Source: Marsupella aquatica
Lineage: Eukaryota; Plantae; Marchantiophyta
Direction of reading: 5' to 3'
Length of the DNA: 64,000 bases
Assembly (NCBI GenBank): GCA_973895155.1
Contig: OZ316899.1
Coordinates: 13,395,934 to 13,459,933 of the forward strand
Part shown: positions 7,456 to 58,600 of the stretch, piece by piece
Layout of the letters: every line of letters begins with the position of its first letter
Position numbering within the stretch: the first letter of the stretch is position 1
Translations under genes and position numbers: made by a program
The notes under the pieces: generated by a model
The model's database searches: none
What the model was told of the DNA's origin: nothing
Seen by the model: only the letters and a program-made list of their open reading frames with translations

Positions 7456-7500
7456 GGATGGGTGCAGTGTAGGAGTAATATTGGCACCATCCTACATATA

Positions 7501-14659: not shown

Positions 14660-14661
14660 CA

Positions 14662-23029: not shown

Positions 23030-23214
23030 GCACGACTTCCTCCTGAATTTTGTAAATTTCCCAATTCTATTTTGATCTCACCCATATGTAGTGGTGCCAC
23101 ATTCCAGGATTGAACTGTGTACAATGGGCATGTATTGATCTTGAACACTTGATTGTGTATTTTGTATGTATTCCCTATCCCCTAAACCCGCCCACATAAC
23201 CATGGAGCCCTAAA

Positions 23215-26356: not shown

Positions 26357-27012
26357 TCATGCAATCCACCTTATGCCAACCTTAGCCAAAATCTGCATAA
26401 GAATGGATCTTTTGGTGTAACAAGTACTAAACAACCCATATTCATCCATCAATTTATCACCTAGATCACTGTGAATATCAGAATTGACGACAGCAGGAAG
26501 TTGCTCCACCAAATTTGGCAGCGCAAACACTGGACTCAGCCTCAGTTTGCCTATTATGTAATCAGGTTTGACCATTAACTCAGGCGCATCCTCCAATGTT
26601 TCTTTCAATCCAACTTTAGGTCCATTTCTCCAAATGGAATGAGTTGCATGACGGACTGTCTTCATATATCTTGTTCTGCCTATCTCAGATCTAGACTTTT
26701 GAGACAAGCATAATATTATGGGGCTTTCGGTTGACATCCTTGTGAAGACCAATTTATTCCTTGATAAACAAAATTGAGACACGGAACAAGTTGAAGCACC
26801 TGCCTCTTCAGCTTCAACATTTGTTGTCTCTCCAAGTGGAAGGTTGTCTTCATTTGCTTGCACAATATCAAGTGTGGGTCCGTGGCGGGTGTAGTGGCTG
26901 CATATTCTACCAAAAATGTGGACAATACCTGTGGTCTCTCGGGATGCAATTTTGAAACTTTAGGGTTGAGAGGATCTGTTGGAGGGTTGCTCTCGGGGCG
27001 ATCCGGCATCAC
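26357..27012 (-). pseudogene. Hypothetical, frameshifted ORF pair of unknown function
   Basis: Overlapping ORFs 26716-27012 and 26357-26863 with protein-like composition; no motif recognised. Confidence 0.25.
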
Positions 27013-32800: not shown

Positions 32801-35800
32801 GGGAGCTCAAGCCGCTTTCAATGCTGCTATCCACGCAGCAAATGGTTAAATAGAGAAATCGGGAGAGGAGGCGCAAGCTCGCAAAAACCATGGAGGAGGG
32901 CCAAATCCGAAGTACATAGCCAATTCAATATAGAAATAAAGTTGCGAGTTAGGGTTCAGTAGTTAGAGATAGTGGCGGCTCTGTTAGGGCTGGGATGGGG
33001 CTCTAGCAACGTAGTATCCACCCATTTGGGCTCAGTAGGAGAGTATATAGAGCAACCCCCCGGTAGAGGGGGAACTTCAGTTGTGTGATCTCACGTGGAT
33101 TGAGCAGCACGGAGGAGCTCTGTGCAAGGAAGGTTGGGCTTGGAAGCTGTGTGTTGGGGAGAGCTTGGTTGTGCTATTACTCAAGGAGTAATCAGCCACG
33201 CTTCACAACAACAGTTGGCCAGGTTTGCAAGCTGGATTGTGGCTCTTTCTAGTAGGGCAACACAACTGGGTTCTTTTCCCCCGATACAGAGCCTTGGTGA
33301 TAGGTGATGTGTTGGTGATTGTAAACTGTGGGGAGGATTTCAATTCAATTTGCGGTGAGCACATTAGGAAGGCTGAGACACTGATTGAGGGGCAGCAGGA
33401 GGAACATTTACAGTTCAGTCTAGCAAGGCTACGTGATCCATGGGGAGTCCCGGCCTTTGTCTGGTAGAGAGCACTAAGGGATTTATGGGCAGGGCTGAGC
33501 TTGCAGGGCAAGCATGAGGCCGGGCCTCATTATAGTCTGGGGTAGATCGCAGTTAGGCCTGGTACCAACTTTGAAGTTGAGTCAACTGTGCATGCGTAAC
33601 TTGACATTCTGAAATGGAGGTGTGAGATCTGTACGTGTCCCCAAGAATGAAGTGCAGTGAAGGAGGTTGAGTTCAGGATTGAGCTTGCATGGCAAGCACG
33701 AGGCTTGTAGGGCAAGCACGTTGCAATCTGGAGGAGACAGCCTTCGGGCCTATTGTTCGGATCAAGTGTTCTCAGTGAACTGTTGTGCACATCTTTGAAT
33801 CTAATTGAGTTTTCCTCTCAGGCCTCATTTCTCTCATGGATGTGTGTGTGTGTGAGGCAATCTGAGTGTATGATGGGACTAGCAGCGCCACTGACAGCTG
33901 TACCGGGTGCATTGAAGTGGGTTGGGTGAGGGCTGTCACAGCTCTGATTGCTGAGAGTGGAATGGCAGAGTGGTGGGGCAATGGCTTAGAAGTCCCTAAG
34001 CCGAGAATCAGTCAGGAGTCACTGGTTTATGGGTACATTCCGGTGGCGGAATAGAAATATACCTATGATCGTAAGCATACGTATAGACATATGCGCACCA
34101 TAGCGCTAGGCCCTGTGTGTACGGGCCCGATATGAAGACCCCTTCTCACCAGAACTATCATGAGCATATGATCTGATTCTCAACCTTGGTTCTTAGGGAT
34201 TGAGCTTGGGTGATGTGTGACGGAGTCTTGCTATGATAGTCTGGTGTTAAGGGCATAAATTGGTGTTTACCGGCCTTCACAACATCCCTTCGTGATCCTC
34301 AGGTACAAGGAGATGGTTTTGGCACCCATAGTGACGTTTTTGGTGTTAAGATCCATGTCAATCGCGTGACAATGTGTATGATATAATAATATAATGTTGG
34401 TAACTGTACAGTTTAAAGCAACGCCAGATGCTAGTATAAACACACTGAGAAGTGACTATTGTACACATTGATAAAACTTACCACGCGAATGAAATTCCCC
34501 CACTGACGCCATCAAACGACCCACCATGATATCCAACTCTGCAACATCATCAGTTTTCCTGGTACACAGTTGCCTACTTGCCACCACAACACAATCTCCC
34601 TAGAAACTGGGTACGCCGCAACAAACAATGGAGCATTTTGCAATTTCTCCCAGAGTCTTTGATGTTCAGGTTGCCTACCCTCCAGTACTCCCTCAGTGGA
34701 ATGTCGATGGAAAGACTGGTAAAAGTGGAATGCATCGGAGCGTTCACGTTCAGGGTTTGGGTGACCTCCAAAAAAGACATTACGAATGGCGATCCATCCA
34801 GCCTGAGCGTTGTCGGCCATAAAACCTTGAATGACAACCTCATGTAACCCATTTTCCTTACAAACCTCAATCATAATTCTCCATGCCTTCTCAAAGGACT
34901 CTGTGTCTTCAGCTTTTAGTTCGCATGTGAATATTGTACAAAGAGCTCAAAAGTTGTGATCGTAAACGTGTGCACTGAAAGTAAACCAGGCGGTTGTCAC
35001 TCGCTTCATGACATCAAAATCACCCAAGCCCCTTCTAGTCTTCCGCCCGGTTGCATCTGCCGTAGAAGATCTACACCAGATCCATGACCCTTGACTGACA
35101 TTTTGAATATGTGGGGCCGATCTGCTAAACAACCCTGACCCGACAGAAGATACCTTTGGAGGAAAGAAATATTATTTGACCTTTGCATTTGAGCTAGGAA
35201 ATCTAACTCACCACGACCAGCCTGGTCCATCCGAACGCTACGACAAAGCGATGCAAATTTCTGCGGAGTAGATAGAACCATGAGAGACTTCCAAATTTGT
35301 GTTTCTTCAATATCTACAATGTTGTCAACGTTCTCGCGAAGAGCTTTCACAAGCAAACCAATCGCGGAATTCAAATCCCAACCGGTTTTGCAAGAGGATT
35401 GGCTTCATGATTTCTTTTTATTAAATCCTCAGCCATCTTTTCAGCGCTCCTCGAGAAAACGTTTCTACTCGGATGGTTATGTTCACCTATATGAACCGCA
35501 AGCCGAGACATGTGACTACAGGTTTCTGTATCAAGTAGGACCTATGGATACATATAGAACAAGCAAGCAGGGCAAGAGTCCACACAAAAAGGAATCTGTT
35601 CACAGTAGTGACATACTATACCACCCTCTTCAATGAACGAACCCACCACATGCTGGCCACTAAGCTTAGGGGTACCAGCCCAGGATTTTGCATTGCATCT
35701 CTTCTTTCGCTGAAAGTACTCACAGGACTTGTTCCTGCACTCGATGAACCCAATACAAGTGACCTTACCAAACTCCCAGTGTTTCTTTGGTTGCACGTTT

Positions 35801-36505: not shown

Positions 36506-39326
36506 GCACTAAGCCAATCCCGACCGTATGGGTTGCTTATACCAACCCTTCAAAGACCACCGGCCGTTAAAAGAGTCGTTTCAATACGACAGAGAACACG
36601 CACAACTTTGCGTCCGTTGAAATCATAAATGAAACATTTGTCCTTTTTTCCCAGCAAGTGCAGGTGTCAGGAATATTTATTACATGAATACGACTAGATA
36701 ATAGCCTATACAAGTGCGTCCATTTCATTAGCGTCGGGCGCTACCTAAAAAGCATTTGAATAACAATGACTTAATTTGAAAAGTCTTGTGACTAGCGCTT
36801 GGCACTAGCATAATCATACACGCAATATTCATGAATTTGTTTTGCAAAATATTCCATCACAAGCATTTTTAAGTTCAAATACAGTAAATTGGTACTAGCA
36901 CCTGACGCTAGTATTGATACAATATACTTAATACCTTAATATCAAGTAAAGTTTAGTTACTACGGTTGAAACAAGTACATTTGGAAGTTTGTTAACAATA
37001 TCTGGTACTAAAATAGAACGTTAATCAAACTATTCACATGGCTAGCGCCCGGCGCTAGCATTTGTTCACCAATAAGTTTTTGAATTTAGTGGTCACTTCT
37101 TCGTTAGCGCCCGGCGTTGGCATTGCATGTATGTCTGAAAGGTGTTGAGACAATGGTAACATTTAATGGTAACTATTGTTTAGCGTGATGATCACGCCAA
37201 CATTTTAGCGTAATTCACATTAATACTTATTGCAATTTCTAAATTGTCGCTTTCTGTCACGGATAAGTAATATTGAATCTTGTCATTCACAATGAGTAAC
37301 GTCTCTCCAACCGATTACAAAGAGGGAAATAGCGCTCATTGATCGGATGTAATACGGACGCAACTGTTAATATGGTACGGAGAACTGGTAATCGGTCGTG
37401 AGAATTCCGTTCGTACACCTTTCATCGTAAAGACGATGGATGTAGTCCCCTCCTTGTCGAGGGGGTATAGTGTGGTTGGGGATTGGGATCGTGGGTATTG
37501 TGAGTCTTCTGAGTCTTCATTCTCTGGTTCAGTGTATACACGTTGAGTAACAAGGTCCACCGCATCGCTTGTTTCAATCTCTGGTATTTTGTTTTCCAAG
37601 CCAGCAAGAAAGAAGATGGAGAATCTTGACACATTTGCAATTCAAGATGTTTCGTTTTTGGAGACCGATCTTATTTCAAAACACGTCATGTCTTTTGGGA
37701 AAGATTTCAGAGGTTTTGACAAAGAGCCTCCACGAATTCTACTATGTTGGTTGGTGCATATGGAGGTTGTCCAAACTCTACAGAAAGATAGCTCTTCCAT
37801 CGACAAGTTGAAAGACTCTTTCCGTAACATGGGATACAATTCTTTGATTGGAATGAGGTTTTATGTTCAGCCTACCGATGCTGAGGGAGTGCTTCTCACC
37901 TGTACTCAGGAAATTTGTGATAGTTGGGATCCAATATGGACATCTGAGAATGAGAAATTCGAGGAAGAATGTGCTGCCGATCCAAATTTTCTGGTTTTGA
38001 AGGATAGAATGTTCTTCGTTTTTTACGGGAACCATAGGCTTTACTCATGGACACTTGTCACTCAGGAGAATCCCCAAAACCCAAAGTACCACCTGCGAGT
38101 GCTTTGTACTATTTTCAATGGGGACAAGGGTTTGCTAATAGAAATCGAAGCGGCTATGCACACCGTTAACCAATAAGATTCTCTTTTGTGCATAACTTTG
38201 TGAGTCATTGTGAATTGTTAATTCTTTCTAGCAGAACTTTCTGAGGCCATGTTTTACAAGCGCCCAACACTACTTATATGTTCTTCTCATTTCATTCTTT
38301 TATTTCAGGCTTGGACAAGCCGTTGTGGAACCCTCCTGGATCCTAGATGCCAATCAAATTAAGCGGATCTTGATGCACGACCTGGAGTACTATAGTAAGC
38401 TCATCGACCCTGCAAATTACAAGAAGTTTGAGCAGATCAGGATGAAGACGCAGAAAGGATCCTGGTACACAAAGAAGATGCCTCAGGAGGCTCTTGTGTA
38501 CATTCTATGTCAGGATAAGATTAAGTCGTATTCGAACCAGTTCAAGATTGACATGGAGTCCGTTGCGGCCCTCGGTACCCCTTGGTTGGTCGAGGAGGTT
38601 TCCAAAAGGCATGCCGTTATGATGAAGGAAGCAACCAAGGAATGGGCAGTGAAAACCTCAAAAATCACTCCTTTGTTGAGTCCAAAGTTTGAAGACTTTT
38701 TGTCTACGTGCGCAGAAATGTATGCTATCACGGAGAGGAATAAGCGGGAGAAGAAGCCAGATACCGTGTTGTGTACCATGGACCGAGCCAGGCTTTTTAC
38801 AGTTGTTTTGGCTCTTGATCCCAAGCTACGAAGTACTTTGCTTGTAGCACATTGCAATCAGGAGCTTTGGAGACAATCCTTCCATCCGAATAGCGTCAAC
38901 GATGATCCAGTAAAACAGTGGTGTCACACCTGGATTACATGGAATAATGTAGAAGTTTTTTAATACAATGTGGCCCTCAAAGTATCCTGACAAAGAGGAT
39001 TACTCTTTGAAGAACCAGAAGCAAGCAAAAAGGTACCTCTACCGTTTTTACATCCACATGGAAGCTACAAAACTTGATTACTTTTGGGCGTATCCCGCCG
39101 CCTTCCTCAAGTGGACTGTAATACCGGAGAGTGATTCTTTAGCTGAATTGTATTCTATGTATCTTGCCAAGGGAATTTTCCCAGCAAGACCTTTGAGTGA
39201 ATGGGAGAGAACCCATTGTCCATGGTACCTAGATACAGATAGATGGGACTCGCCTTTTGATCATAGAGAAAAGGATGCTTTCCATAAGCTGTCTAAGTCC
39301 CAGATCCCAGTCAACGTTGTTTTTGA

Positions 39327-39730
39327 CATGAAGCAGGGGCTTCCGGATGATGTGGATCAATCCACAATAGAATTGCAAACAATATGTGAGACAACAATTG
39401 TTCATGTTGACCAAAGCAGGAAGCCTCGCGCCAAAGCAAAAGCAGATACTACGGCCCCAAGTGAATCAACAAGATCTGGGAAAAAATGTAAGTATAATTT
39501 GTATCTCATTGGTTAGCGCTCGACGCTACTATGGCAGTCAATATCTGTCACATTGTTAGCGCCCGGCGCTGCTATGGCAGTCAATATCTGTTACATTGTT
39601 AGCGCCCGACGCTGCTATGAGTGTCAATATTTCAGAAACTGAATTAGTATCATTAGTCAAAAAAGTGTATATTTATGGCCAAGTCTTAGAGATAGTTTGG
39701 CTTGCGCTGGGCGTTAGCCTTGTCGTTGCC
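39327..39730 (+). repeat. First copy of a 404-bp direct duplication
   Basis: Ungapped match to 51116-51519 with about 14 substitutions by eye, mostly transitions. Confidence 0.95.
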
Positions 39731-40512
39731 CCTGGGCCCCCAGCCTTTGTATAGTTAAGGGGTATACGTGCGTACAACCCCTTAACATATACCCCTTATT
39801 ATCTTTGGACACCCATAAAAATACCTCTTGTTATTCTTAAAAAGTTAATTTCAGAGAATTTATTTGCCCCTTGCCAGAATTATAAATAGACAATTAGTCA
39901 AATTTATAAAGGTCTTGAAATTTTATAAATTTTTGCGTTAATACAAAAGTGCTGAAAAATATACCATTAAATAATAGGTAATTATAGATAGAGACTTTTT
40001 AAATGGAGTAACATAATTAGATTAACTAGAAGATTCACTATATTTTAGCACATGTAATAGTGTAGTCTCTCTGTTTTAGCACATGTGATAGTGCTTGCAA
40101 ATGTACCTATTGTTCAACTATAAGAGCATATATGGTTGCACAACTGCTCTCTTACAAACGTACCTATCTATAGAAAACATTATGTTGCACGCATGTCAGT
40201 TCAATGTTTACAGAACTCCTATTTCAACTAAGAGAACCCTCCCGTTGTCTTTCATCTTCAAGTGATCCTGAGTGAACACAATCCAAAAATTTACATCAGA
40301 ACAGTAATGATTTAGCTGTCCAACTAAACTCCTATTTGAAGAATGTAAACCTAATGAACACATGTTCTATTGTATTTCATATCAAATGGGATATCAAATT
40401 GTTCACAAAAACAAATAGAATGTGAAGTACTTGCCTGCAAGAAAATCTTGTCACCCTGTATGGTTGAATTCTCAGAACTTCACCATCTCTGTCTACATCT
40501 CTGTCGTACCAA

Positions 40513-43500
40513 TCACTTATGTGCTTTAGCAAAATCATCCAACAGATTTGCATCACAGGGATGCAAATGAAAAACATTTGGAGTTGTGGGATTCACTGAT
40601 AGTGTCACGTTTGATATGACACAGTCCAAATCAATCCACTGAGGATCACAAACATTGTAAGCAAATTTGTGCTTACTATTTCCAATCCTTGAAAACCATT
40701 CAAAACGAACTCTTACAGCTTCTTCACCGCCAGGCCTATCAAGTAAATCCACTGATTGTCTTGTTCTACCCATCACCCGACCCTGATACTTTCGTTGGAT
40801 GCACTGTACCCTCCCTATCCACCAAGTGTACTTAAGGCCATCAGGGACTATGGTAACATTCACAGATTCTCCCCTTGGCCTTTTTGGATTGGGGGCAGAA
40901 GATCCACTTGTCCCACGTTCCTTCCTTGCTCTTTTCCCTTTCATAGCTTTTTGTATAGCCTCAGTGGCTCTTGTGCCCCGAATCTGTATTGTTGTATCAG
41001 CAAAGAGAACTCCACAATCACTACCCACAGTCATGAACATGGTGACTGCTCCTGCTCGATCTTTGGGTGCATCAACTAAATTGTTGAAGGACAAGCTCTA
41101 TTTCACTCTAGTCAAACGATCCTTACTTACATTGGGGTTGCCAACTAGTTGGCTCACCAATGTGCTCTTATACATTGTTCGACCATCAAAACTCATAGTT
41201 GGTCTAATGTCAAGAACAGGTTGTCCATACACCAAGTCTGAATGCATTTCAGACATAACAGCTGAACAATGATCTCCTACTATTGCAATGCTTGGCCTGT
41301 CACTATCTTCAATGATTTCACTACCTTCTGCCATTGCAATATCTGTTGGGATTTCAGTATCGGTTGGAAGTGTGGGGATGGTTACATTAGCTACAGCTTG
41401 CCTGACCTCCCTACCTGATTCTTCATCATCACTATCAACAGGAGCAAGATCCTCCACTTGAACATCACACCATCCTCCAAACTTGGACCCTTTCTTTTCA
41501 GTAACCCAAGGTGAGTCCCACCATACTTTATCCCTACAAGATGTAGATGGATTCATCTGTAGCTCGATTCCTACAGTCTGGGCTAAACTAACCCTTCTTT
41601 CAAGGCTACCACAATTTCTTCATTAGTTTCAACACGTGTATAGTCTACAGGATTAACAGAAGTACTAACTTGTACTGGTACTGGATGAAGTTTCATCCAA
41701 ATATTGCAATGCTTCTTGTGACTTTTCCCAGCCCCTCTAATCCCTTTGCTGAGATCCATTGCTGCCAACCTATTCAAAGATGTTGCACAGTCAATCAACT
41801 CAGAGAAATCATAGCTGCGCTCATTCCCTTTCATTCCTCCTACTTTGGAGAAAAACTATTCACAAGCATCAGATCCTGTCAAATGCAATGGCACATTTGG
41901 CAAATGTCAAAAATTATCCCTGAATTGGATAATTAGAAGTACCACAAAATGCACAGACATCTGAATATCAAGAAATGTCTGCATAGGGACACAACTCACA
42001 GTAAAATTGATTGCTGTTGTGTTACCCCCAACACTATGATTTCCATGAAAACACCATAATCGCCAAAGGCGGAAAAAGAAACTAACTTTGCCACAGAGCA
42101 CAACCCGTTCTCTCAAGGTGAGACAAGGATTCATAAAGATATCCAAGTAATCACCACATATTGTGAGATACATCTCAGTCCCCAGAGTTCGCTCAACTCT
42201 TGCATCTTTCCTTTCACGAAGCATTCTTAGTACCTTCACAACTTTCCTACTACATAGTCATTGTGCACTAGCCCAATTCTGTCTATCATTCCGTGTAACA
42301 TCACCTTTGTTCAACCCATGATCCAAGTTGCTATATAAATGTTGGAGAGTGTCCAAGTTACTGATTCCAGCCACCTCTGTTCCCAACTTCAAAGTTCTGG
42401 CAGCAGAATCAAGTGGGTTTATTAACTTCTTTCTATTATGAATGTAATCCTGATCATGTAACCCAACACCATGTGTATGACATCCATTGGTAGTGAATGA
42501 GTGGCTTAATAGCCAACCTTCCCATCTCAGATTTTGTCTTTGCCCTTGATATGAGCTTTGACCAGTGTAGTCTTCTAGCATGAGCTTCCTCCTTCGTGCA
42601 TCTCCATCACTGGCATGACCCAAGAGAGGACCAACTGAGTCTAGACAATATTTAGCCCACATAGTGTCTGTGGACTTCCATTGCTGACTGACAAAATTTG
42701 TAGTAAACTTACCGCATGTACTCATGGCTACCATGCAAAACTTAGGAAATCTTTCTGCAAGAGGATTTACTACTATGCATCTGGCCTGGTTTCCAATTTT
42801 GTAATTCTCAAAGGTATAAGTGATTTTGCTGAAACCCTCCTCTCCTGCTCCAACCTTTATTGTCAAGCCAACCACACACTGGTGATCCTCTTTCAACCCA
42901 CAAAACCCCAATAATGTGTCATGTTTTGGTTGCCATCTGCAACACAGCCATCCACAGTAGTGGTCAGCCACAGACCTCTTGAGGAGAGGGATAATAGACA
43001 AAAATTTGCTTCTGTAGGATGTTGTCAGGGAAATGAAATCACCTGACTGTCCGCTTAAGACAAGTCTCATCTTCTGCCAAATAGCATGGCACGGGACCTG
43101 TGATCCCCATCCTCTGCTTTAGCTGAGAGTATACAGCGGCAACAAACTTGAACTGGTCAGCATGCAAACCAGGCCTAAATACAGCCATGGCTCTCCTATC
43201 CCGTTGAAGGGTGTTCAGGCTAGGGCCTAATGCATTACTTTGCAAGCAGTCCACCACACGCCTGCCACCGTGTTGGAACAATATCTGGGAAAGAAGTTTA
43301 GTGTCGGGCCGAAAGGTGTTTCCTTCTTTCTTCCTATTAAGGTTTGCAGCTACATCTTGCAACAAGTCCCATAGGGCCTCTCTCCCACCAAATGCACCAC
43401 GTTGGTGAGCCAAGACTATGTCATTGCAGAACTTGTATAGGTCTTTCCTAATTCCAGACTCTTTGCAAAGATCTCTCAAAGTGGGGACTCAAGCCCCCAG

Positions 43501-45251
43501 CATGCACAGGCGGTGCTGCTAAGCTCTGAGACGTTTTCTGAGAGACAAAATGTTTCTCTTGTAAGTTTTGGCTTGTTCTTGAATCTCAAGAATTGTGAGA
43601 TATGCCAACCGTCTACCCTTACCGATTCCTCGAGTACCTCTTTTCTCTACTGCAATGTCCTCTCTAAAGGCTCTTAACCGGAAGTCACCCATCCTTGCAA
43701 TACTGTAACATTCTTCACAAGTCAGATCCTGGAAACCACCAAGAAGCTGTGATGCTCTACTACAATTCACATGCCTGAACAGTCCTTCTATCAAACAAGA
43801 TTCTTGGCCTAGAAGACACCACACCTCTGCCCTTACCCCTGGCTCCGCGTACCATGCTCCGTCAACCTTTGGCTGATCTAATAGGATATCCTTGATAGGT
43901 ATTGAACTGAGTTCCGCCACAATCCCCAACACAACAATGACCAAGGGTGGGGTTTACCTGGATCTCCTATCACATCCCCTGAATGGCCTGAACCTCCACT
44001 GTAACCACTCCCTCCTGAACCACTCCCTCCAGCTGTCCCTCCTGACCGGCTGCTGGAAGCAATATCTTTGGCCTGCCGGGTTAAGAACCCATTAATGGTT
44101 CTTTGGCAAACATCCCTCTTATCATCCTTAGGAGGTCTGCCTGATCTTCCTGACAGTACTGGTGCACCAGGTGGTGGCTTTAAACTCCTAGCCACTACTG
44201 ATAGATGATTTGCATAGATGCAATGGGATTTCAGATTAACCTCCAGATTACGTTGCTTGGGTACCAAAGTGAACACGTCGGAGCAAAAATGGCACCCCAC
44301 TTTGAACCGCTCTAACTTCACCACAGGCTCCTTTTGAACATCACCTATAATGTAGAAGGTAGGTTTGGACACAGGCTCAGATTCATTGAGCCTTTCAACA
44401 ATCTGAACGTGCATGTCAAGAGTTGCACGATCATTCAAGGAGGAAGCTGCAGCCCTTCGACTGATCTCAGCAGAGTCTACTCTCTGCCCCCTATTATGTG
44501 CCACATTTTTGGCATGCTTTGGGGTGATCAAATGCTTCTGTTTGAAATTTGTGAAACAATTAGTGACAGACACCCTATCCATAACATACTTAGACGATCC
44601 AGATATATTAGTGTTGCACTCGCAACACTCTATCTTACCACATGGAACACCACCACTGTCCCAAGTTTTGACGCTCCACTTGTGGTCCTCACACTTTATG
44701 AAGACCATATGCTCCTTCAGCTTGTCAACACTGGACACCCAGAGCTTGGCCAGATCATTTGACATAGTTGTTGACTGGAAACTCACATGTGGATCATCAT
44801 CCACAGTTACATGCAAATGGTCATTAGGGAGAGCTGAAGTTGGGGGCGAAACAGGCAGAGACAAGTCCTGTTGTCACCACTGTATCTCAGGCTCTACCCT
44901 AACTTCAGTGTGCCACTCTCCGTCACTAACACTCTTACTCAGAGCCTCAGCATTGGAGGCATTGCTGCTTCCAACATCAACCCCCACTTTTTGGATGGGC
45001 ACAGACTGTATTTTGGGGATGATGACAATCTTTCCATCACAATCATCAATGAGGTTGCCTTTTTCCCAAGCAGCACGCAATCTACAACCTCCCACGCTAT
45101 CAATAAAATCAAAATCAAAGTCCCAAAGTTCCAAATCCACCATTTTCTGCCTAGCATCCGCCAAGGTCCATCTAGGGAGACAACTAATGGTCCCTGAGTG
45201 TTTTCTGGTCCCTGACTCATGGTCAACGAGAAATACAAGCACAGGCGGCAT
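40513..45251 (-). pseudogene. P-element/THAP9-like DDE transposase with N-terminal zinc fingers and a possible C-terminal BAH-like domain; disrupted
   Basis: Ordered motifs LAEDET (~43070), GHASDGD (~42605), DQDYIHNRKKLIN (DxxH, ~42440), DRQN (~42285) and GSDACE*FFS (~41865) parallel the P transposase FDEM / SDxG / DxxHxxK / DKQ / QDxLExFF motifs. Intron 42937-43042. Zinc fingers CCEC..H..H and CHFC..H..H in 43878-44864. C-terminus WWIGRVQCI..VRFEWF..IDLDCVISNVTL. Confidence 0.75.
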
Positions 45252-45622
45252 GAAAAAATCACAGATTCAGACCTGCAAGCAATACATTGGACATGTCACA
45301 TTCAAGCATTTCCCCACAATATACACATGTCAATTACACAATCAACACTACCAAAAGAACCACCATTCTGATATAGAAGTCTGTAAACTTTACAGTCCAT
45401 TTCTTGAGATTGCAAAACCTATCTCAAAAGTTTCAGATTGATCCAAGTATATACAATAGAACTACAAAAAATAATCTGGGTGGTGCACTAACTCTTGGAA
45501 ATGAGTAACGCTTCAAAATCAAGTACTGAGGTTCAAAATCGCCTACGTCTGTCAGTCTCCTCATCACTATCACTACCCCAACCTCCCCAATGTGGTTGTT
45601 CTCTCCAAACATTTAATTTTGG

Positions 45623-46288
45623 CTAATGTGGAATAGTCTTCACGGTGTGGGGATAAGCCCACAACCAATGGAATTCCACTTGGTTCAAGTCAGGATGAAC
45701 CACTGCCACTGAAACCCTGCGTGATGGAATGTCACAACAGACTAACATGCAACATCCACATAAGCTTCCATCTGCCATTTTAGCAGTTGGTAGACCACAG
45801 ACATTTACGGTTCTTGAATATGTACAGAGAGGTTGAGGAGGGAGTTGTCTATTTCGGTAGGGATACAGTTTCCAAAATACGTCAACCAAAAACTCTGTGG
45901 CCAGAGGATTTTCCAGACCATCAATGACGTCCTGGATTTCATCAAAACATTCCTTTCTATTTTCCTTGTAGAAGTTTGCTTCATACAACAGAAGCCCCTT
46001 CACCACATGACAACAGTGAAGAATGAAGGTCTTCACTGCACTAGATTTGATGAGGAGAAATATAACATTTCTATTGTACTTGACATATTTGTCCCATCTG
46101 ATGTAAATCATTCTATCGCCTTGATCCACGAAGAAATGGTGCACATTCAGGTAATATTCTCTGCAGAGTAGCCCTGCAATATGCATAGTTAATTCTGAAT
46201 TCAACCTCTTCAAGTGTAACAGAAGATCCCCTCTGCCATAATCAGGCTCGGGTAGTATCCACTTCAGGTATGGATAAATCTCCAACAT
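45623..46288 (-). CDS. Hypothetical protein, last exon of a probable multi-exon cargo gene in the P-like element
   Basis: Uninterrupted 221-aa ORF preceded by an AG acceptor at ~46293. Further GT-AG-bounded exon-like segments lie upstream to ~50450. Confidence 0.5.
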   Translation of the reverse strand: MLEIYPYLKWILPEPDYGRGDLLLHLKRLNSELTMHIAGLLCREYYLNVHHFFVDQGDRMIYIRWDKYVKYNRNVIFLLIKSSAVKTFILHCCHVVKGLLLYEANFYKENRKECFDEIQDVIDGLENPLATEFLVDVFWKLYPYRNRQLPPQPLCTYSRTVNVCGLPTAKMADGSLCGCCMLVCCDIPSRRVSVAVVHPDLNQVEFHWLWAYPHTVKTIPH

Positions 46289-49200
46289 TGCCTGTTAAAA
46301 CCAGGCAGAATGTAGTGAGTTATTAAATCTAAACTGTGACCTCCCCAATCAAATACCCTAGTACACACCTACAACAGCCCACTGCTTGGGAGACCACATC
46401 CATTGGACCAACCCCCAAGAGAGCCTTGCCCCATCCCGGCCATTGCGCTTGGTGATTGGCTTCTACAAATCCAAGTCAGTTTTCTCCGAGAAATCTCGGG
46501 TGGGAAGGGTGGACCCTTTGCTGACAAGGATTCCAATGTCAATGTAAGCACTGGAGGGATTGGGATCTGTAACATGCTCATGTGTGCTTGGCATGTATAG
46601 TCGGGTTTCCCACACTCCAATTCCCTCCACTCGAACACAGTGGACTTGGACTCAGTACCTATTGACCCTAAGTGCCCCAAGAAATTGGATTCCTTGACAA
46701 TCCCGGACCAACCAAACCCTAACACTTTGGGCTCTAATCAGGAATGCCATTGGCGATCAACTCCAAGGCCCCCCTCCCAGGCAACCTGCTCTCTCATTCA
46801 AGGGGCGCTAGACTGCTGGGTCATCACTTCCAACAAGTCTCCTCCGGGGGCATTAGTTCCCCGGGGTCCCAATGAACTTGAGGAACCTGCAAACCAACAC
46901 TTGCAATAGCAGGAAAGGAAATTGCAAAAAGGACCTAGAAAATAAAAACTTGCAAACTTACCTAAGCAACACACAATGCCTGTCAGTTAGCATCTGTGGA
47001 AACATTACAGATACAGTAATCCAGAAGGAAATAGTACAAAATTCAAAATTGATTGGATACCTTGTGATGGTGGAACCCAACACTTGGGGGCGTCTGTCCT
47101 TCCTGACTTCAGAGGTGTATGAATCTGCATAAATGACAACAAAAATTGAGTTGAAGGAATATCTTTAAAAATAGTTTGCAGTGGGACTATTTAGAAGGGT
47201 AATGCCAGGAAAAGGAAGGTATTGCCATATACCGTCACATCAATGATCCCCCAAATCTTACCTTACAGCATCCCACACACTGAGTATGCTTTTGGAGGTG
47301 GGGCGTAGGGGCAGAATACTATCGCAATGATCACTCCCTCCTATAAAAAGTGAGAAGCAAAGAGAAGGCATTAAGTGAATAGCAATTCAAATTTGTCTTA
47401 TTAGTAATGCAACACAATTAGCATGGGCAATTGAAATTGTTACCATTTCAGCCCACATTTCAGTAATCACCTATTGAGCAAATTACTAAATTTTGTGATC
47501 AAATAAAGTTACGCAATACTGTTGTAGTGAACAAATGAAGTGGTTTTTGTAATATTGCAATCTGTTTAGGATATTTCAATGGGTGAATATGGTTATTTGA
47601 ATAATGCAACCCATTGCAAAGGTTTGAATTAGCAAAAAAACTTCAGGTCAATCTGTAAATCCGAGATAGATTGGCAAAGAGATTGGCTAGGACACAACTA
47701 GGATGCCCCCAGGGATGTTCAAAATAAATTTGAACATTGATTTTGTGGACCAGGTCAGAATTCAGCTGGAGGCCAAAAGAGATCATTTGCGACAACAACT
47801 CCATTCATAGACAATCATGTTGAAGGAGTGCATGGGCTTGGGAAAAATACTCCTTGCAAAATTAGAGGGATAATAGAGGGGCCCAAGGCTTTAAGGCAGA
47901 TTTTGTAGAATACTTTAGGGTGTGTTAGGCTTCAGTTGTGTTAATTATCCAATTGTACATAGTTTCTTACGTACGTTTAGTCTCCTATTTCACAGTCAAA
48001 TTCAAAATGCCATGAAATCACATTTGATATTGTAGACGCCCCACTAAATGATCCTCTGCTCGGGGGCAAACAGTCTCAACTCCTGGACCTAAGACCCGCT
48101 CATCATGATTCCAAATTACAAAAGCGCCCACCTTCTGATTCTGTTTTGACCAGCCTAGTTATAAAAATTGCCTAGGCGTACCAGACAATTTGGACAAGAC
48201 ATCTCACAGCTGTGGATACATCCAGAGTATAGAGTATACTCTAATTGTGCCATGCCATTGACAAGTGGGACAATGCGAATACCTTTGGGCAACACATGAA
48301 TGCCCTCAGATATTGGCCGACTATAGGTGTTCCTATGTACAATTGGATATTCCCAGACCACAGTGGAACTGGCAGGAACCAACCTCATGGAAACAAGCTT
48401 GAGACGAAATCTTTCTCCTCTGCCGTCAAGGTCTGCTCCAAGATGGCTGCGTGTCCTAGGCATCTCAACCTTCTAGAGAGCTTGAAGATTTACACCTGAG
48501 GCAGTACAGAATGACATATGGTCAGAGTAAATTCACAAAGCACCAAGCCAAAATGAGAATGTATAAGCAAATAACTAATTCATAAGCTTCTTTTCGATCA
48601 AACAACGACATTTCTACCCCTTAGTACACAATTATTCCTAGACTAGTACAATCAACACAGAGGAGAACTGAGATAGAGGATGTTGGATTACCTACAGAAC
48701 CAATTAGTCCAAGCACAGCCCAAGCACATTTGTGGCACCTCCCTTCCAAGAAAATGGCAAACTACCCAAAAGTAGACACTTTCCACCTAGCCCGTGGTAG
48801 ACACCTTCCATAGGGACTTCTGCAGCACTAGCCGCACACGGGGCCGCACATTCGACAGATAAAATGCCGGGACAGCAAGAGCAACAGCTCCTGCACACAT
48901 TTGAAGCACAAATTTAACCGCGATGGAGCAACAAATAGGAGTTCACCATGCTCCGCTACTCTGAACAAGAGCAAATGATATACCAACAGATTTGAAAATC
49001 ACTATGTGCAGGAAGAACGATTATATTTGAAAATAACCTGTTTGCTTGCAATTCCCTCTGCCAGCAGCGCTTCCCGTAGACAAGCTTGGCAAACTCAGGC
49101 TCGGGCTGACGCTCTTCAACAGTCCAAAACTAAACCTCCCGGGCTGCAATCGCTTGCAGTCTTTTGAGGTGGATAGCGCTCACCCAAACAAAAACTCTGC

Positions 49201-50559
49201 TATCACAAAAAATATTAGCTAAAGGAAACCAACACTCCACAACTGCACAAGCATTGGCGCCCACAGGAAGCCCTACACAGGAAGCCCTACACCCACATTA
49301 ACAAGACGACAACAATGAGCACGACAATGTGCAAATCGCAGAGAGCACCGTAACTATCCAACAAACTGATAAGAGATAATTGCTTCTTCGTCCTCAACCT
49401 TGGTCCGATCCTACGTTCCTTTGTTTTGATCCTATGAGGAGCTCACATCGGTGTTCAAATATTCCAAACGACAGCGGAAACAAACATAGTCGGGCCCTGC
49501 CAACATTCAATTAACACGGGATTGCCAAAACGCCACAACCAGACTCAACATAAAAGCTTGTACAGCTTCAGCATACAATGAAAGACTAAAATTTCATAGA
49601 CAATGACAATGAGCAGAGGGTGTGCAGGGTGGTGAAAAGGCAAGACACTGATTCGGACCTTTTTGCATTGCACCATCCTAGGATTTGTGGGCCTCTACGG
49701 ATAGCTTGAGACACCGTCTGCAGCTGCACTTGGGGCAACGGTACTAGACCTTACATAGACAATGCCGCCTCCACAACACCCAAGGCACGCCACCTTACAT
49801 TTTCTACAACATTTCCCGGAACATTTGAGCCCTACTGTGAGCCGCAATTTCAAAACAAGAGGAGTTGACCATAGTCGAAAGTGGAGCGAGAAGTGCAATG
49901 CATACCCAAATATTTGAATCTTGTACTATGCGGAGTAAGGTAGTGAGCCTAGTAAGATAGTGAGCACAAAGTTTACTTAGCATGCAAAAAGCAAAGATGT
50001 TGGACCTCTTTCAGATGCCTGGGCTTCCCGCTGGGCTTTCGACAAACGACCAGCAGACAAATGACACTGAGCGCAGATCAACAATAGCCACAGCAACACC
50101 TCAGCCTGCGCCTCACCCTTCTTGCTGATCAACGGTAGCTCGGGCAATAGCTGGCAGTAGGTTTCGAGCTTGCATAGTTAATAAAGTGTATGCATGCAGC
50201 ATAAACAATGGAAAGTATGATCATTCTACATAAACAGTGGGTAGTGTAAAGAAAGTTACCCCTAAACAATGCTCTGAAAAAGGTGCGCCTCCCGCAGTCG
50301 GTCCCGCCAGTGCATGCCTCCCAGCCTTGCAATGTCCCGCTTTGCATCTAACGCCACTTTCGCAAGCATCAAGCGCCGGCCTGACACCACAGCATTTCAT
50401 GTAGGCCCCATAGCTTCCTTCATCCAAGGTCCGTCGCCAACCTGCAAGCCTCCACTTCCTTCAGCCTAAATCAAACCTCTCGACTTGGCAGCACTACATG
50501 AAATCCGGCGGCTCGAAGTTGAGCCCTAATTCCCTTCGACCCCGACTTTGACACTCCCT

Positions 50560-50800
50560 TGGACGCTTTGACCTTGGGCCTTCAACTCCCGCTTCAACTC
50601 ATTCCCTTCAGGATTGAGTTCTCCACCCCTACCTTGGGCCTTCGACTCAAGTACTCCCCTGCCCCGGGCCTTTGACTCACTCCCTTGAGGATTGAGTACT
50701 CCGCCCCTGCCTCGGGCCTTCGACTGATTCCCTTGGGGATTGAGTACTCCCCTGCCCCGGGCCTTTGACTCACTCCCTTGGGGATTGAGTACTCCCCCTG
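50560..50800. repeat. Tandem array of ~40-47-bp units near the 5' end of the P-like element
   Basis: Repeated ggattgagtactcccctgccccgggcctttgactcactccctt-type units. Confidence 0.85.
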
Positions 50801-51115
50801 AACTTTTGCCCCGCAAACACCCAAAACCCCCCATAAATGTACCCCCCAAAAACCTTTCACCTCAAACCCCAAAAGCCAAAATACATTTCATAACTCCTTA
50901 TCCTATTCACCACAAGTATTGGTTAAACTTAACTCAACTCAGGGTGTGCCACGTGGACCAATCTCATTGTGACGCGTGGCGTGCCAAATTCCTGGCCCCC
51001 TTCAAGCAAATTATTTTCGCCGGCATTTTGGATGCCCAGGAATAGTTATAAAGAGATTGTCGTATAAAAGTTGGTCTTGTTGCTTATAATTCAATTATAA
51101 AAATTAATTCAGAAG

Positions 51116-51519
51116 CATGAAGCAGGGGCTTCCGGACGATGTGGATCAATCCACAATAGAATTGCAAACAATATGTGAGACAACAATTGTTCATGTTGAC
51201 CAAAGCAGGAAGCCTCGCGCCAAAGCAAAAGTAGATACTACGGCCCCAAGTGAATCAACAAGATCTGGGAAAAAACATAAGTATAATTTGTATCTCATTG
51301 GTTAGCGCCCCGTGCTGCTATGGCAGTCAATATCTGTCACATTGTTAGCGCCCGGCGTTGCTATGGCAGTCAATATCTGTTACATTGTTAGCGCCCGATG
51401 CTGCTATGAGTGTCAATATTTCAGAAACTGAATTAGTATTTTTAGTCAAAAAAGTGTATATTTATGGCCAAGTCTTAGAGATAGTTTGGCTTGCGCTGGG
51501 CATTAGCCTTGTCGTTGCC
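51116..51519 (+). repeat. Second copy of the 404-bp direct duplication
   Basis: Matches 39327-39730; the host intron and exon continue directly after it (acceptor AACAG at ~51559). Confidence 0.95.
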
Positions 51520-53695
51520 TCAATATTGACGGATATCACATCGACATCCATTTGAACAGGGAGAAATCCAGACGCCGTGGGGAGTGGAGATACAAAGATA
51601 GATGCCACCCCAGAGGCTTCTGAAGACAATACCAGAGCACCATCCGATCCAATTAGTCCCGCCGAGAAAGGGAAGGCGATCGGTCCAGTGGATGCAACCA
51701 GTACAAGGAAGAAGAGGAAAAGGACCATTGAAGGTGGATCTTCCTCTCAAGAAAGTGCATTGCCTTGTTGAATCTAGCATCTCAGAATTCTATGACTCAA
51801 CGTTTAACAAAGGGGAGAAGCCTGACTGGGTGAATGGTGTAGAGAAATGGGGAAAGGATCTCATGAAGTCTAGTTTTTGAGAGAAGGGCGTTGTGCGTGG
51901 GGGAAAGGAGAGATAGTTTGGAGTCCACGCGGGTTTTATCAACCTTTTGACAGGACTTAAAACCATCTCTGCTAGACAGAAAAGTCCCGAAATGGAATGT
52001 CCCCGACCACACATTGGCCACCTCTTTCTTTCATGGAATGGATCCATTTTTATCTGATGACGGAATGTTGGCCATTTTACATAACCGGGAGTACGATCCA
52101 ATGTCTCAGGTTATATCGGCTTGTTAGAAATCAAAGAAGTTTCATTGCATCTCGACACACAATGTTGTCATGTTAGTTCCAATGACGTACGCGCTGAAGA
52201 TTGATCGACGGGTAAATTTCTCATTGTGACATCTGGTTTGCAGTTCAAAGAATGTTTATGAATGCATCCATTGACATACCATTCTTGGGTTATATTTCAG
52301 ATCTTCACCCTCAGGCTGGACGTCTTCTGTCGAGTGTCTGAAAAAGGGAAGGTGCCAAAAGACTCAAGGTTTAGACCTCTATTTGTCACGGAAGATCCCT
52401 CCATAACGAATTTAATTGGACTTCCCTCTCTCAAAGTCGATCCAATACCTAAGATGGAATTTTCTGGGAATGCCCGTTTGTTGATTGGATTCATGCAATC
52501 TGTGATTGAGCTCATCACTCGGCCTAGGGATATTTTCATGGATTGGACAGTGGGGTCGGGTAGCTCTTTTGTAGTTGGAGACTATTCTGGGAGGTTTGTA
52601 ATTGGAGTGGAGAATAGGAAAGATTTTGTTGAAACTGGTTCCAAGGTGTTCTTAGATCTACTTTCTCCAAAGGAAGTCAAAACTTTGCTACCCCCAATTC
52701 AACCACCCGAAAAGAAAAGGAGAGAAAGCTCCGTTCTGTACTTAATTTTGACTCTGACAATGAGTCAAGTGGTGCGACAACAGACAAAGATGAGGATGGC
52801 ACACCTGAGGGGAAGGGTCAGGAACAATCCGCTGGCCAGAGTGACAACGATGACTCTTCCGAGTAATGTTCTGAAACTCGTAAGCTTCTTTCTCCTTTCC
52901 AGTTCCTTCATGCTTTTGTGCTATACAATCGGTTGACAAACTTCTATTCTCACCCAGGTCCAAATGAAATATGAGAAGGCGCTTCAAACTCATAAGAAAA
53001 GTAGCTCGTTTTGAAATTGTCACTCCGGAGAAACCATTTGTTTTACCCTCTTATGCTGAGAACGCTACAAGAATGGAAGATAATCAGAGGACTCTTTTTT
53101 GGAAAAATAAAGGTCTTCGGCTATGGAGAGGAGTTGATAGATTTTTTTTCTAAAATCCTTATGTAGACGATGTTTGTAGAAGCAAGTATGTAGATGATGA
53201 GGCAGTCTCAACCGAGAGGTCACAGAGCTCCGAATCGGAATCGTCCGATTCATGAAACATTTTTGCGGCTAAGATTTTACCAGCGCCAGGCGCTGTTATC
53301 AAAATACATGTATTTATTATCCCAGTTATGATTGGTTTACGTTACATTGATAATAAAATGTATTAAATTCCTCATTTCCCTTACTAGCATCGGGCGCTCC
53401 CCAAATGTCTACTTTTCTAATTACAAATTTTGAATCTTCTGTCCGTTCCATGGCCCCGCATATTTTGTCATTACCGGAAATAGTTGTCTCTTTCTCACAT
53501 GTTGCGGTCGGTCTTTCTCAACGGTCCTTTTTCCGTTGAACCTTGTTGTGTTACATTTTTGCTGATCTATGACCCTAAACTCTCCATTAGGTCACTCTTG
53601 TGAGTCATTTCAGGCACAACCTCTCTCGAAGTCAGGTCATTTCAACAACACCGGTCTTGTCATTAGCCTCAATTTTGTTTAACAGTTCCCACCAG

Positions 53696-54097: not shown

Positions 54098-55654
54098 GGT
54101 TCAAGCAAAACCATAGACGGGCCAGGGCAAGCATCGACGATGACTGCCAATCGCAGAGCTAAAGTTGTTCAGGACGGAGGTGGTTTGAGTGACACAAGCT
54201 TTAGTGGCCATAGGCTTGCATACGATTTGCTATTCCTTAATCGCCATTTAAGCTAGCGTCGAGCGCTGCTTTTGTCCGTCTTGGACCATGGGATTTCTTC
54301 TATGGTTGATTCGGAGTTCGTGTATTTTTGGCTACATCTTTAGGCCCATTTTGGATCAACGTCCCAATTATGTGCGGCTCAGGTCAAGAAAAAGCACAGA
54401 CGGGCCAGGGCAGGCTTCGACGACGACTGGAAATCATAGGGATTCTGGTGCTCAGGCCGGAGGTGCTTTCAATGACAGAAGGTCCAGTTTTAGTGTGTTG
54501 GTGACGATTTCCTTTTTAGAGAGCTAGATTTAAGCTAGTGCCAAGCGCTGCTTATGTTCATGTTATGCCGTGGGTTGATTTGGGGATGATCTGCGGTTGG
54601 TGTAATACCGGTTATATGTTTTGACCCATTTTGGAAGTAAAGATTGCAGTTTTGGATCGGCTCTCTTGTTCTTTCATGGTCATTCATTGATTCCATAATG
54701 AGATAGCGCCGAGCGTTGCTTATGTTCATTGTGTTCCGTGTTTAGGCGCAGATGTTGAATTGTATGTTGCAACTATTGATTTCTAGGAGTCCGACATTTA
54801 AGGTAGCGCCCATCGCTGCAAATATTCAACGTCTGTCGTGGCCTCTCTTGGTTGGAAATGCTTGAAATCGAGTTTTTTGTTCACTTCTCGATTGATGTCA
54901 CGTACAATCTCTATCTTTTGCCCTGAAATTCCCCCTTCCCTTCCGGCATACTAGCGCTAGGCGTTGCTAATCTTTGCAAATTTTGGCAACGCCTTTGTTC
55001 TAATGGCCGTTAAGTTTCTTGTTCTCTTCTCGATTGACGGTACGTAGAATCTCCATCTTTTTCATTATTTTAGGAATACCTAAAATTGGCCTTTCCCTGC
55101 CGGCATACTAGCGCTGGGCGTTGGTAATCTTCAGAAATTTTGGCAACGCCTTTTTTCTAATGGCCCTTACTTTCCTTCACAATTGGATGGTGTTATTGAA
55201 AACGACTGAAAATGGGGTTTATATATGGTGTTTTTTTAAACTTTTGACCAAATAATGGAGCTCAATCACATTTTTTTTCCATTTCTCCTGGTAACAATAT
55301 CTGTTTGCTATTACTGTTTCTTGGTTCATGTCGTTTGTAAATACCCCGTTGGAAGGGGAGCAAGCCAAACTTCCAAATTTGGCAACTCTACAACAAATAC
55401 ATGGCAAGATACACCAACCTGGAGTCATAATAACAGTTGGGGTCATGGTAGAGGACGCGGCCTACGTCAAACTAACTTCAATACTCAGAGAGATAAGAAC
55501 CCTGATGCGCCCCAATGTTTTTGCTGTGGCACCAGAGGGCACTTGCAAAATGAATGTAGGGCACCCAGCCATTTAGTCAATTATACCAAGAAAGCTTGAA
55601 TAAACCCCTTACATCATTACAAGGCAACTTCTTAGAAATGAACAATAACATTAC

Positions 55655-58600
55655 TGTTCAATCTCACAAATCATACTCCAGTCTTTACTCATCCAAAGGT
55701 TTATGTACATCAGGTTGTTGCTAAGGCGGTTGGTGGTATAACCGCCTTATATGCCCTAACTTTAGGTAGACTTCTCTTAGGGGTTATAACACTCCCCCTT
55801 GGATGCAACTTTTATAGGGGTAAAGTTGCAGACATTTAAAGTCTACTTATGATAAAGTAAGTTATGTTCTATATCCTATTGTTTGGTATGGTGGTTTGTA
55901 TTGAAGGTGGGGTGTAACCTCATCAAAACCTCCCCTCCTTTCTTGTGGGAGGAAAGAGTATTACCACCCCTATCTTCATTTGTAAAGGAATTTAAACTAT
56001 GTAAGAAAATAATATGGTATTCTAAAGTATTTTGAAGTTGCTAAGACTAATTATGTTATATGTAAGAGAACTAGGCAATTCATAATTGTTCGATAGTTGA
56101 GAGTATTCAGTATTGTGTTGGCGTGGGTTCGGGAAGATTAGGTTGCCGGTTCCTGTGTTTTGTGTTCGAGGAGTATGCTTGGTAATGTTTGAATGATCGG
56201 TATGTGTGCAATGTCGATCAACTTTTGATTGCTGCATTGGGTGAATCGTTGTTTTGGTCCCCGTCTGCTAGTTGTGGAGTTGTCTGCATTGAAGTCGTGT
56301 TTGATCAGTGGTGATTTGCGCATATGTTCATGGTTGCAGGGAAGTTCATCCTCCGCCTCATCTTCTAATTCTTTTGTTGTCCATTTTCTTGTGTCAGTTC
56401 AAGTAAACTACGCATGCTGATAGATTTAGTAAGTGCAGTATGGAGAACCGGGGGTAAGGATTTAGTGAATAGGTCTGCGTTGTTTTCAGAGTTGGGGATC
56501 CATTGGACATCGATTGTATCTCCCTGCTGTTCATGTGCAAAGAAAAATTTGGGAGCAATGTGCTTTGTCCTATCGCCTTTAATGAATCTAGCTGAAATCT
56601 GCTCTATGCATGGTCGATTATCTTCGTAAATGACTGTGGGTGGTAGTAGCTTGGGCATACCTGTCGTGTCTTGAATATATTGGATTATGTTTTGTAGCCA
56701 GATACATTCACGGCTGGCTTCATACAGTGCTATGATCTCGGAGTGATTCGAAGAAGTTGTTGTGAGGGTCTGTTTTGTGCTTCGCCAAGAAATAGCAGTA
56801 GGTCCGAGCATAAAAACGTACCCTGTTTGTGATTTTGCATCAGCCGGGTCGGACAGGTAGCCAGCATCCGTGTAGCTGCTAATGTGATGTCCATTGTGTA
56901 GGGATAAAATAATCCGAGGTTGACCATGCCGCTTAGGTAGCAAAGTATCCGTTTGATGTTGTTCCAATGCCTGATTGTTGGTTGTGCGCTATGACGAGCT
57001 AGTAGATTAACTGCAAATGCAATGTTAGGGCGTGTCTGGGAGGCAAGGAATAATAATGCTCCTATGGTTGACAAATATGGCTTTTCCGAGCCAAGTAGTG
57101 GCTCTCCCTCAGTTCTTTTTTGAAAGATGTCTTTGTCTCTATCCAGTGAACGTAAATCCATTGGTGATTTGACTGGTTTTGTTGTATGCATGTTGAATTG
57201 TTTTAGCATCCTGCGAGTATAAGTGGCTTGGTGGAGGAGTATGCCTGCTGATAGGTGTTCGAACTGTAGTCCGAGGAAGAATGTAGTTCTCCCCAAATCT
57301 CTGATTTTGAATATCTTGTTTAGCTGACGAATCGTTTTGTGCAGGATATTTGGTGTCCCAAATAAGTTGAGATCATCCACATAGATGGCCACTATTATTA
57401 TCTCCTGCTTTTTGTATTTGATAAATAAGCAGGGGGTAAATCAGAGGTTTTGAAGCCCATAGCTAGCATTTCGTTTTTGAAATGTCTATACCAGGTGTGC
57501 CCACTCTGTTTTAACCCGTACATTGAACGAAGGACCTGTACAGCGAAGCGGGTTTGGGCAGTAAGTGCCATTTGTTCTTGTGTTGGCTTAGTAGAAGCCT
57601 ACCATCCTATTGCTTTTGCTGTAGTGTGTAGCACTGCCTTATTGGTGTGGCCAAAAGGGCCGTCACTTTTTGTTGTAATGCCTGTTTGCATGTGCTCCCC
57701 CTGAATGTGGTAATTAACTCTTGTTAATAACTCGAAGGAGCTTCCATGTAGATGGTGGTGTCAAGGTGGCCGTATAGATAAGCAGTAACAATGTCCAGTT
57801 GGTGCATTGTTAGTTTGTGGTGAACTGCGAATGCTATTAGGTATCTGTATGTGATGACGTCCATGACCGGTGAGTAGGTTAGGTCAGAGTCTCTGCCAGG
57901 GATTTGAGTAAATCCCTTAACTACTAAATGGGCCTTGTATCTGACAATCTTGCCTTGTGCATCCCGTTTTTTTATGAAGGTCCATTTATAGCCAGTGAGG
58001 TGGGTATGGGTTGGGGCCGGCCTGATTGGTCCAAAGACTTGTCGGGAAATCAATGAGTCCAGCTTCGAGTTAATGGCTGTCTGCCATTCTGGCCAATCTT
58101 GTTGCTTCTGGGCTTCTGTTATCGTTGTCGGATCAGGTGAGTCCTCCATGATCTCTTGTGATATCTGGAATGCGAATGTGCTATCTGGGATTGATGTATC
58201 TCTGTTCCAGATATTGCCTGTGGAGTTGTAATTGATGGCTATTTCTTCATTTTTGGGTGGAGGGATGTTGTGTGGTGCTCTCCTCTGTCGTGGTTGTTTG
58301 TCGGTGGCCCCAAGTGGGCGCCCCCGTTTCCTCCATGGCTCAGCATTGTTTACTGGTTGGTTATCTATGTCGATTTTGGAGGGTGTTGGCTGTAGGTATG
58401 TGGAATCTGGTGACTTTTGCAGCATCAGCAAATGCATCGGGAAGCTCCTCCATTATTCTGTTGAGGTGTAAGATCCGTTGGACTTCCATATCGGTTTGTG
58501 TGGTCCTAGGGTCATTCCAGAATTTAGAATTGAGTTGCCATGCTAGTTTTGGCAATGGGGTGGTTTTTTGACCGGTGCTGAGTGTTGGAAATATATTTTC

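Follow-up and report, generated by a model that had tools for sequence, protein, structure and literature searches.

The window analysed here, a stretch of 64,000 nucleotides from the liverwort Marsupella aquatica (NCBI GenBank assembly GCA_973895155.1, contig OZ316899.1, positions 13,395,934 to 13,459,933 of the forward strand), contains a P-superfamily-like DNA transposon that interrupts a ParB/methylase-like gene, itself belonging to a transposon, and that is bracketed by two direct copies, R and R', of a 404-bp segment. Read from left to right, the overall structure is U-R-[P-like]-F-R'-D, where U and D are the upstream and downstream parts of the host gene and F is a short filler (Table 1). 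The left junction (39730/39731) falls exactly at a terminus of the transposon, and the filler keeps the other, probable terminus away from R'.

Table 1. Features of the window and complete relatives of the inserted element (positions refer to the window unless a locus is named; TIR, terminal inverted repeat; TSD, target-site duplication; MITE, miniature inverted-repeat transposable element; ORF, open reading frame)
Feature	Position	Strand	Description
U	37547..39326	+	Upstream exons of the host ParB/methylase-like gene, continuous into R (ORFs, P0035, L011)
R	39327..39730	+	Left duplication copy; exon 39327-39487, donor GT 39488-39489; the intron carries a 43-bp array (x 2.9)
P-superfamily-like DNA transposon	39731..51040	- (gene)	11,310 bp; 3' terminus well supported, 5' terminus probable
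Decayed P-like transposase gene	40516..45251	-	In-frame stops at 42258-42260, at 41098-41100 and directly after the putative catalytic E (GSDACE-stop-FFS); frame changes
Conserved upstream block	46391..46568	-	72% over 179 bp of DNA against the Calypogeia element
MITE-like insertion	47947..48348		Nested in the 5' part of the element; ~400 bp, 16-bp TIR (ATCCAATTGTACATAG), 3-bp TSD (ATT)
Tandem array	50572..50798		~45-bp unit, 3-5 units, 5' subterminal; possibly transposase-binding or regulatory
F (filler)	51041..51115		75 bp, AT-rich, between the probable 5' terminus and R'
R'	51116..51519	+	Right duplication copy; donor mutated (CATAAGT)
D	51520..52933	+	Host gene continued: final 40 bp of intron, acceptor 51557-51559, exon from 51560, methylase-like ORF 52262-52933
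Complete relative L015	192-6287 (L015)		6,096 bp; TIR 27 bp, perfect; TSD GTTTTCAT, 8/8
Complete relative L003	6683-13552 (L003)		6,870 bp; TIR 15 bp, 13/15; TSD CGCTTAGT, 8/8

Of the duplicated segment, 161 bp are exon and 243 bp are intron of the host gene, whose exon pieces were searched one by one. An ORF (38953-39513) spans the left boundary of R, and P0035, a homologous protein of a different species (57% identity), aligns unbroken over the U/R boundary at ...VVFD/MKQG.... The contig that encodes this homolog (L011) represents an uninterrupted relative locus, where the exon gives way to a ~190-bp intron that contains two palindromes, and an acceptor then opens an exon that reads ...EGGTDDTK. 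The alignment of L011 covers the passage from U into R, not the DNA to the left of R'. Downstream of R', the remaining intron leads to a CAG acceptor and to an exon whose correct phase contains no stop over 69 codons (...VGSGDTKID...). Thus, the homologous protein, its locus and the in-phase exon show that the continuities from U to R and from R' to D are both native, and R and R' are native host sequence of the ParB/methylase-like gene rather than as long terminal repeats (LTRs). An LTR reading of the two copies was rejected, as the left end of the repeat is situated within a host exon that is conserved in P0035 and L011. A Pfam search of the ORFs of the insert found no reverse transcriptase, integrase or gag domain between the repeats.

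BLASTN gives a gap-free alignment of R with R' across 404 bp (96.5% identity; 14 mismatches), and the similarity ends abruptly on either side. A second long repeat pair comparable to this one was not found in the 36-55 kb region. Each copy harbors the same 43-bp tandem array of 2.9 units, with palindromes of the type TAGCGCC.GGCGCTA. The differences between the copies are for the most part CpG-type transitions, and five of them are clustered within 9 bp. At positions 39487-39488 the left copy reads TG and the right copy CA, for which the common precursor would be CG, deaminated on opposite strands. Since this pair derives from CG separately in each copy, R and R' have decayed independently from one sequence; the duplication event is therefore old and real, and this independent decay argues against a duplicate created in the assembly. 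Their divergence of 3.5% is intermediate among the LTR pairs of the window (88-99% identical). An earlier note on this stretch had described ungapped direct copies, ~96-97% identical, of host exon and intron sequence on either side of the insertion, a description that the BLASTN alignment, the two homologous sequences and the in-phase exon after R' now corroborate.

The minus-strand ORFs from 45251 down to 40516 belong to a single decayed gene. The Pfam library gave no match to the ORFs of the window copy even at E ≤ 10 and, in eight full-length relatives searched at E ≤ 0.01, no core domain but one Tudor tail and one SAP tail; neither THAP nor Pfam TNP-like domains were detected in these searches. 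Cysteine-rich N-termini do occur. A word search retrieved 34 relatives, none with Pfam domains; those that are named come from the liverworts Calypogeia fissa and Riccia fluitans. An exhaustive profile search retrieved 2,448 cluster representatives (50% clustering), many of them 1,000-1,500 residues long. The family is very large, lacks a Pfam annotation and has members in mosses and liverworts as well as in metagenomes of marine or coral type (marine eukaryotes). A PTM/DIR17 Tudor domain or a SAP domain forms the end of some of these proteins. Family alignments (A2 and A3) show the conserved motifs AEDET, GHxSDGDxRRR, DQDxxHNxKKLxNP and GSDxCExFFS, and in A3 the residues D133/E134, S252-D253-G254-D255 and E525 are fully or almost invariant and include the putative catalytic D, D and E, as assigned from the alignment. 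In the window copy, AEDET, GHASDGD and GSDACE can still be recognized, the last of these being followed by a stop.

Profile searches of PDB sequences returned no real match to the family, and its relationships became apparent from a predicted structure. A first AlphaFold model, built with 20 sequences, was too poor for use (predicted local distance difference test score, pLDDT, of 50). A second model, that of the family member P0044 built with 50 sequences, has a pLDDT of 88 and a predicted template modelling score (pTM) of 0.88. Its top Foldseek match is the Drosophila P element transposase (PDB identifier 6p5a_A) with an E-value of 3e-10, and using VIA-align the two could be superimposed with a Z-score of 27.1 and a root-mean-square deviation of 5.0 over 410 of 442 residues. 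The next structural matches are Transib (Z-score 11.9, the second best) and RAG1, both within a Z-score range of 10-12, and then hAT (~8). The ORFs of the window align with the protein family of P0044, and the model thus places this family with the P element transposases at the level of the fold; at this level, the designation 'P-like' given to the element earlier is borne out, the Z-score to the P transposase being set against that to Transib.

The manner in which relatives of the element insert was assessed by a scan for TIRs with TSDs over 80 related metagenome loci and the loci around P0019. Two complete relatives were found, L015 and L003, the latter representing a single locus seen in L001-L010, and both are flanked by perfect 8-bp TSDs (Table 1). 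Their proteins are colinear with the gene of the window, with 45-48% identity over ~760-780 residues. The gene-3' end is precise and the subterminal architecture is conserved in relatives (L015, L018-20 and moss copies). A moss family has 11-bp TIRs (GGGGGACATTT; locus L028) and includes a MITE-like derivative. On these complete members, the family is a canonical P-type TIR element that makes 8-bp TSDs. No clear termini were found in the Riccia and ENA loci (L093, L094), and the contigs of the moss family and of L017-20 stop inside the element, so that the left terminus is not definable there.

The moss derivative, which lies on a moss-associated metagenome contig (L028:450-1132), is a non-autonomous element of ~680 bp that has GGGGGACATTT as its left TIR and in which the final 250 bp of the autonomous element recur in diverged form. 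It is flanked by CACCTTAA and CACCCTCC, a possible decayed 8-bp TSD. Four other metagenome contigs (L017-L020) contain copies of a compact P-like element that are 99% identical and differ in their right flanks, which suggests that this element was recently active. The left parts of these contigs end in a (CACAA/CATAA)n microsatellite, and L018 diverges at an apparent intron end. Upstream, L018-20 have no second copy of their right flanks.

The closest relative for which DNA is available is that of Calypogeia fissa (L092), with 55-78% identity in the best protein segments. On the gene strand, the left end of the window copy aligns with it from AATAAGGGGTA... to ...GGGCCCAGG and the two diverge at once beyond this point. 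Since the similarity stops exactly there, the 3' terminus can be placed at 39731 (±1 nt), flush with R. A long TIR was not found in the window (seeds, BLAST and 14-16-mers with mismatches). The terminal heptamer CCTGGGC, however, has only two minus-strand sites in the whole window and a single one in the 45-52 kb region, as GCCCAGG at 51034-51040, the chance of such a site lying within 100 bp of the junction being ~0.7%. Read inwards from 51040 this end is CCTGGGCATCC, which matches the other terminus at 10 of 14 positions, seven of them forming a perfect repeat. In the Calypogeia locus, CCTGGGCACC stands at the corresponding place and is the sole such site upstream of the gene; when it is taken as the end, the element measures 6,982 bp, a size like those of L003 and L015. 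A 5' terminus at 51040 is therefore considered probable. Another candidate, at 46412-46419 (CCCCCAAG), was rejected because the DNA homology with Calypogeia runs past it to 46568. The window copy has no 8-bp TSD, the bases outside the two termini being TCGTTGCC on the left and AATAGTTA on the right, in agreement with the absence of a short TSD reported in the earlier note. That note had also seen no convincing TIR and described an 11.4-kb element; there is indeed no long TIR, but a perfect 7-bp inverted repeat is present, and with the probable 5' terminus the 11.4 kb resolve into a transposon of 11,310 bp and a filler of 75 bp, so that the element is not flush with the right copy.

Within the insert, the block conserved with Calypogeia shows that the element reaches to at least 46568. 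Two ORFs without a Pfam match lie upstream of the transposase gene, at 45626-46294(-) (223 codons) and 46372-46737(-) (122 codons), and the second, which overlaps the conserved block, could represent either a conserved 5' exon or another gene. Among 91 related loci, no protein or DNA matched the 5' 5.8 kb of the element, in which the 179-bp block is the part matched by L092. The filler F has no match elsewhere in the window. Its final four bases (GAAG) repeat a tetramer located three bases inside R', a weak hint at synthesis-dependent end joining. Poly-A and microsatellite tails are absent from both junctions, and an origin as a long interspersed nuclear element (LINE) by target-primed reverse transcription was rejected, as neither the long minus-strand ORFs nor any ORF of at least 55 amino acids in 45.2-51.1 kb revealed a reverse transcriptase or endonuclease domain.

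Around the insertion, the palindrome type found in R and R' also occurs upstream of the host gene (36730-36813) and downstream of it (54251-54840), in addition to its place in the intron (39507-39630). Long direct repeat pairs typical of nested LTR retrotransposons are present at 7500-15900 (94%), 19493-34372 (78-94%) and 55655-61432 (99% identical). The second of these adjoins the left side of the host element and may truncate it.

We favor, with a probability of about 0.6, the explanation that a canonical insertion with an 8-bp TSD was followed by a one-off repair, such that a break at the 5' end gave rise to the 404-bp duplication as a by-product, which is thus not a TSD. A P-superfamily cut-and-paste element would have inserted into the host intron at what is now the R/D boundary, giving rise to the precise 39730/39731 junction, and the transposase would then have cleaved the 5' end alone. 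The host-side end would have invaded a homologous template, either another copy of the host element or R itself by way of the 8-bp TSD, and ~400 bp would have been copied leftwards to form R'. Dissociation would have been followed by end-joining to the still-intact 5' terminus, with the gain of the 75-bp filler. The order of these events and the repair pathway are those that we infer, and they have parallels in that the P transposase cuts its two ends asynchronously (PMC7776569) and in that P and Ac/Ds elements produce flanking duplications and deletions via alternative transposition (PMC3744419). The 75-bp filler, in turn, points to end-joining and repair synthesis, whereas a simple long TSD or a hybrid-element insertion fits poorly, since both would leave both termini flush. 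The earlier note had offered a one-off repair or aberrant transposition event as one of two alternatives, and this proposal fits the locus and gains strength from the filler in front of the right copy.

Several observations weigh against this explanation. F has no source within the window, and the element is ~4.3 kb longer than its relatives, of which the nested MITE accounts for 0.4 kb only. The 8-bp TSD rule is based on relatives outside this genome and subfamily, with 45-50% protein identity, and the TSD of the Calypogeia element itself is not recognizable. The 5' terminus is based on the 7-bp inverted repeat (10/14) and one Calypogeia site, and if 51040 is wrong the right end of the insert is an arbitrary breakpoint. 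Moreover, from the structure alone, repair synthesis at a resident element and one-ended transposition with donor flank look alike.

One-ended transposition is the alternative that fares best, though we consider it unlikely. It supposes that the 3' terminus alone was cut and joined to the target, that the break on the other side occurred 75 bp outside the element, making F a transduced donor flank, and that repair linked F with a break in the opposite target strand at a distance of 404 bp, fill-in then producing R and R'. It would explain why the junction of R with the element is precise and the other is not, and why 75 bp of foreign DNA adjoin an apparently intact 5' terminus, and alternative transposition of P and Ac is documented (PMC3744419). 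It requires, however, two target breaks 404 bp apart, a spacing without known reason.

A further, rather improbable alternative starts from two neighboring host copies in the same orientation. The first, retained up to the end of R, would carry the P-like insertion, the second would be 5'-truncated at R', and a flanking deletion from the 5' end of the P-like element would have removed the DNA between the two, so that the 404-bp overlap would be a coincidence. The region is very transposon-dense, F is unrelated to U, and a divergence of 3.5% with five differences in 9 bp would suit paralogous copies. The retained parts, however, must happen to rebuild exactly one element with a small overlap, no further sequence of the host element is duplicated in 36-55 kb, and the same palindrome type is found on both sides. 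This account is less parsimonious than that of repair.

Hybrid-element insertion of the sister-chromatid type, in which ends of sister copies insert nearby, is known in Drosophila to leave P elements between direct duplications whose length is arbitrary. The fold match assigns the enzyme to the P superfamily, in keeping with such an event, but both termini would then be expected flush with host DNA, an arrangement that the 75-bp filler does not fit, and we regard this origin as very unlikely. It is equally doubtful that the liverwort subfamily, unlike the relatives examined, joins its ends to target strands hundreds of bases apart; a subfamily with recurrent long duplications would be the first cut-and-paste eukaryotic element with a DDE transposase to have long target duplications like those of IS1634.

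That widely staggered cuts give long and variable target duplications as a rule throughout the family, the other alternative of the earlier note, has slightly poorer prospects still. The sole support for such a rule is the 404-bp flanking repeat, and long TSDs do exist in eukaryotes, for retroelements (PMC9977147). The filler at one junction and the lack of a detected reverse transcriptase or endonuclease domain in the insert speak against it, and a family-wide long-TSD mechanism is not supported because two independent complete relatives, L015 and L003, have perfect 8-bp TSDs; ordinary TSDs, which the earlier note had named as the finding that would refute it, are thus present at these relatives and contradict the proposal. 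Finally, an assembly artefact or misjoin, for which the repeat-rich region might speak, is the least credible explanation, given the 14 differing sites with independent CpG decay and given that a misjoin within a shared repeat would leave one copy of it instead of producing two.

The locus perhaps offers a clean natural example, in a plant-lineage genome, of a scar left by repair or aberrant transposition at a P-type element, and illustrates that exon sequence can be duplicated by such events. It also led to a very large transposase family without Pfam annotation that its predicted structure identifies as P element transposase and whose complete members have canonical TIRs and make TSDs of 8 bp. 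A eukaryotic DDE family with a long-TSD mechanism would be remarkable, but the evidence goes against it. Long and variable target duplications are known from the bacterial insertion sequences IS1634 and IS1549. In eukaryotes, the Dualen LINE of Chlamydomonas makes long TSDs with a median of 900 bp, and those of R9 are 126 bp (PMC9977147). The insert described here resembles all of these in being flanked by a duplication of 100-1,000 bp. In those families, however, long duplications are regular and the LINEs depend on target-primed reverse transcription, whereas no reverse transcriptase was found in the insert and its relatives make 8-bp TSDs.

The products of P hybrid-element insertion and of Ac/Ds alternative transposition (PMC3744419) are closer parallels, since there, too, a cut-and-paste element lies between direct duplications of host DNA as the outcome of a rare aberrant event; their termini are flush, unlike the one that adjoins the filler here. 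With the Drosophila P element and the vertebrate Pdre/THAP9, the family shares the predicted transposase fold, the conserved acidic motifs (DE..., SDGD and ...E..FFS) and the D-x-x-H motif, and its complete members have TIRs and 8-bp TSDs as do P and Pdre (PMC7776569). It differs from them in having no Pfam THAP or TNP-like match, in its much larger proteins of ~1,000-1,500 amino acids, some with Tudor or SAP tails, and in elements of 6-12 kb, and the window copy differs in addition in having no 8-bp TSD and a perfect TIR of 7 bp only. Within the green lineage, an active P element, P-2_cRei, is present in Chlamydomonas (PMC9977147), and the likeness, drawn from its description and without sequence comparison, is that elements of the P superfamily are present and mobile in green organisms.

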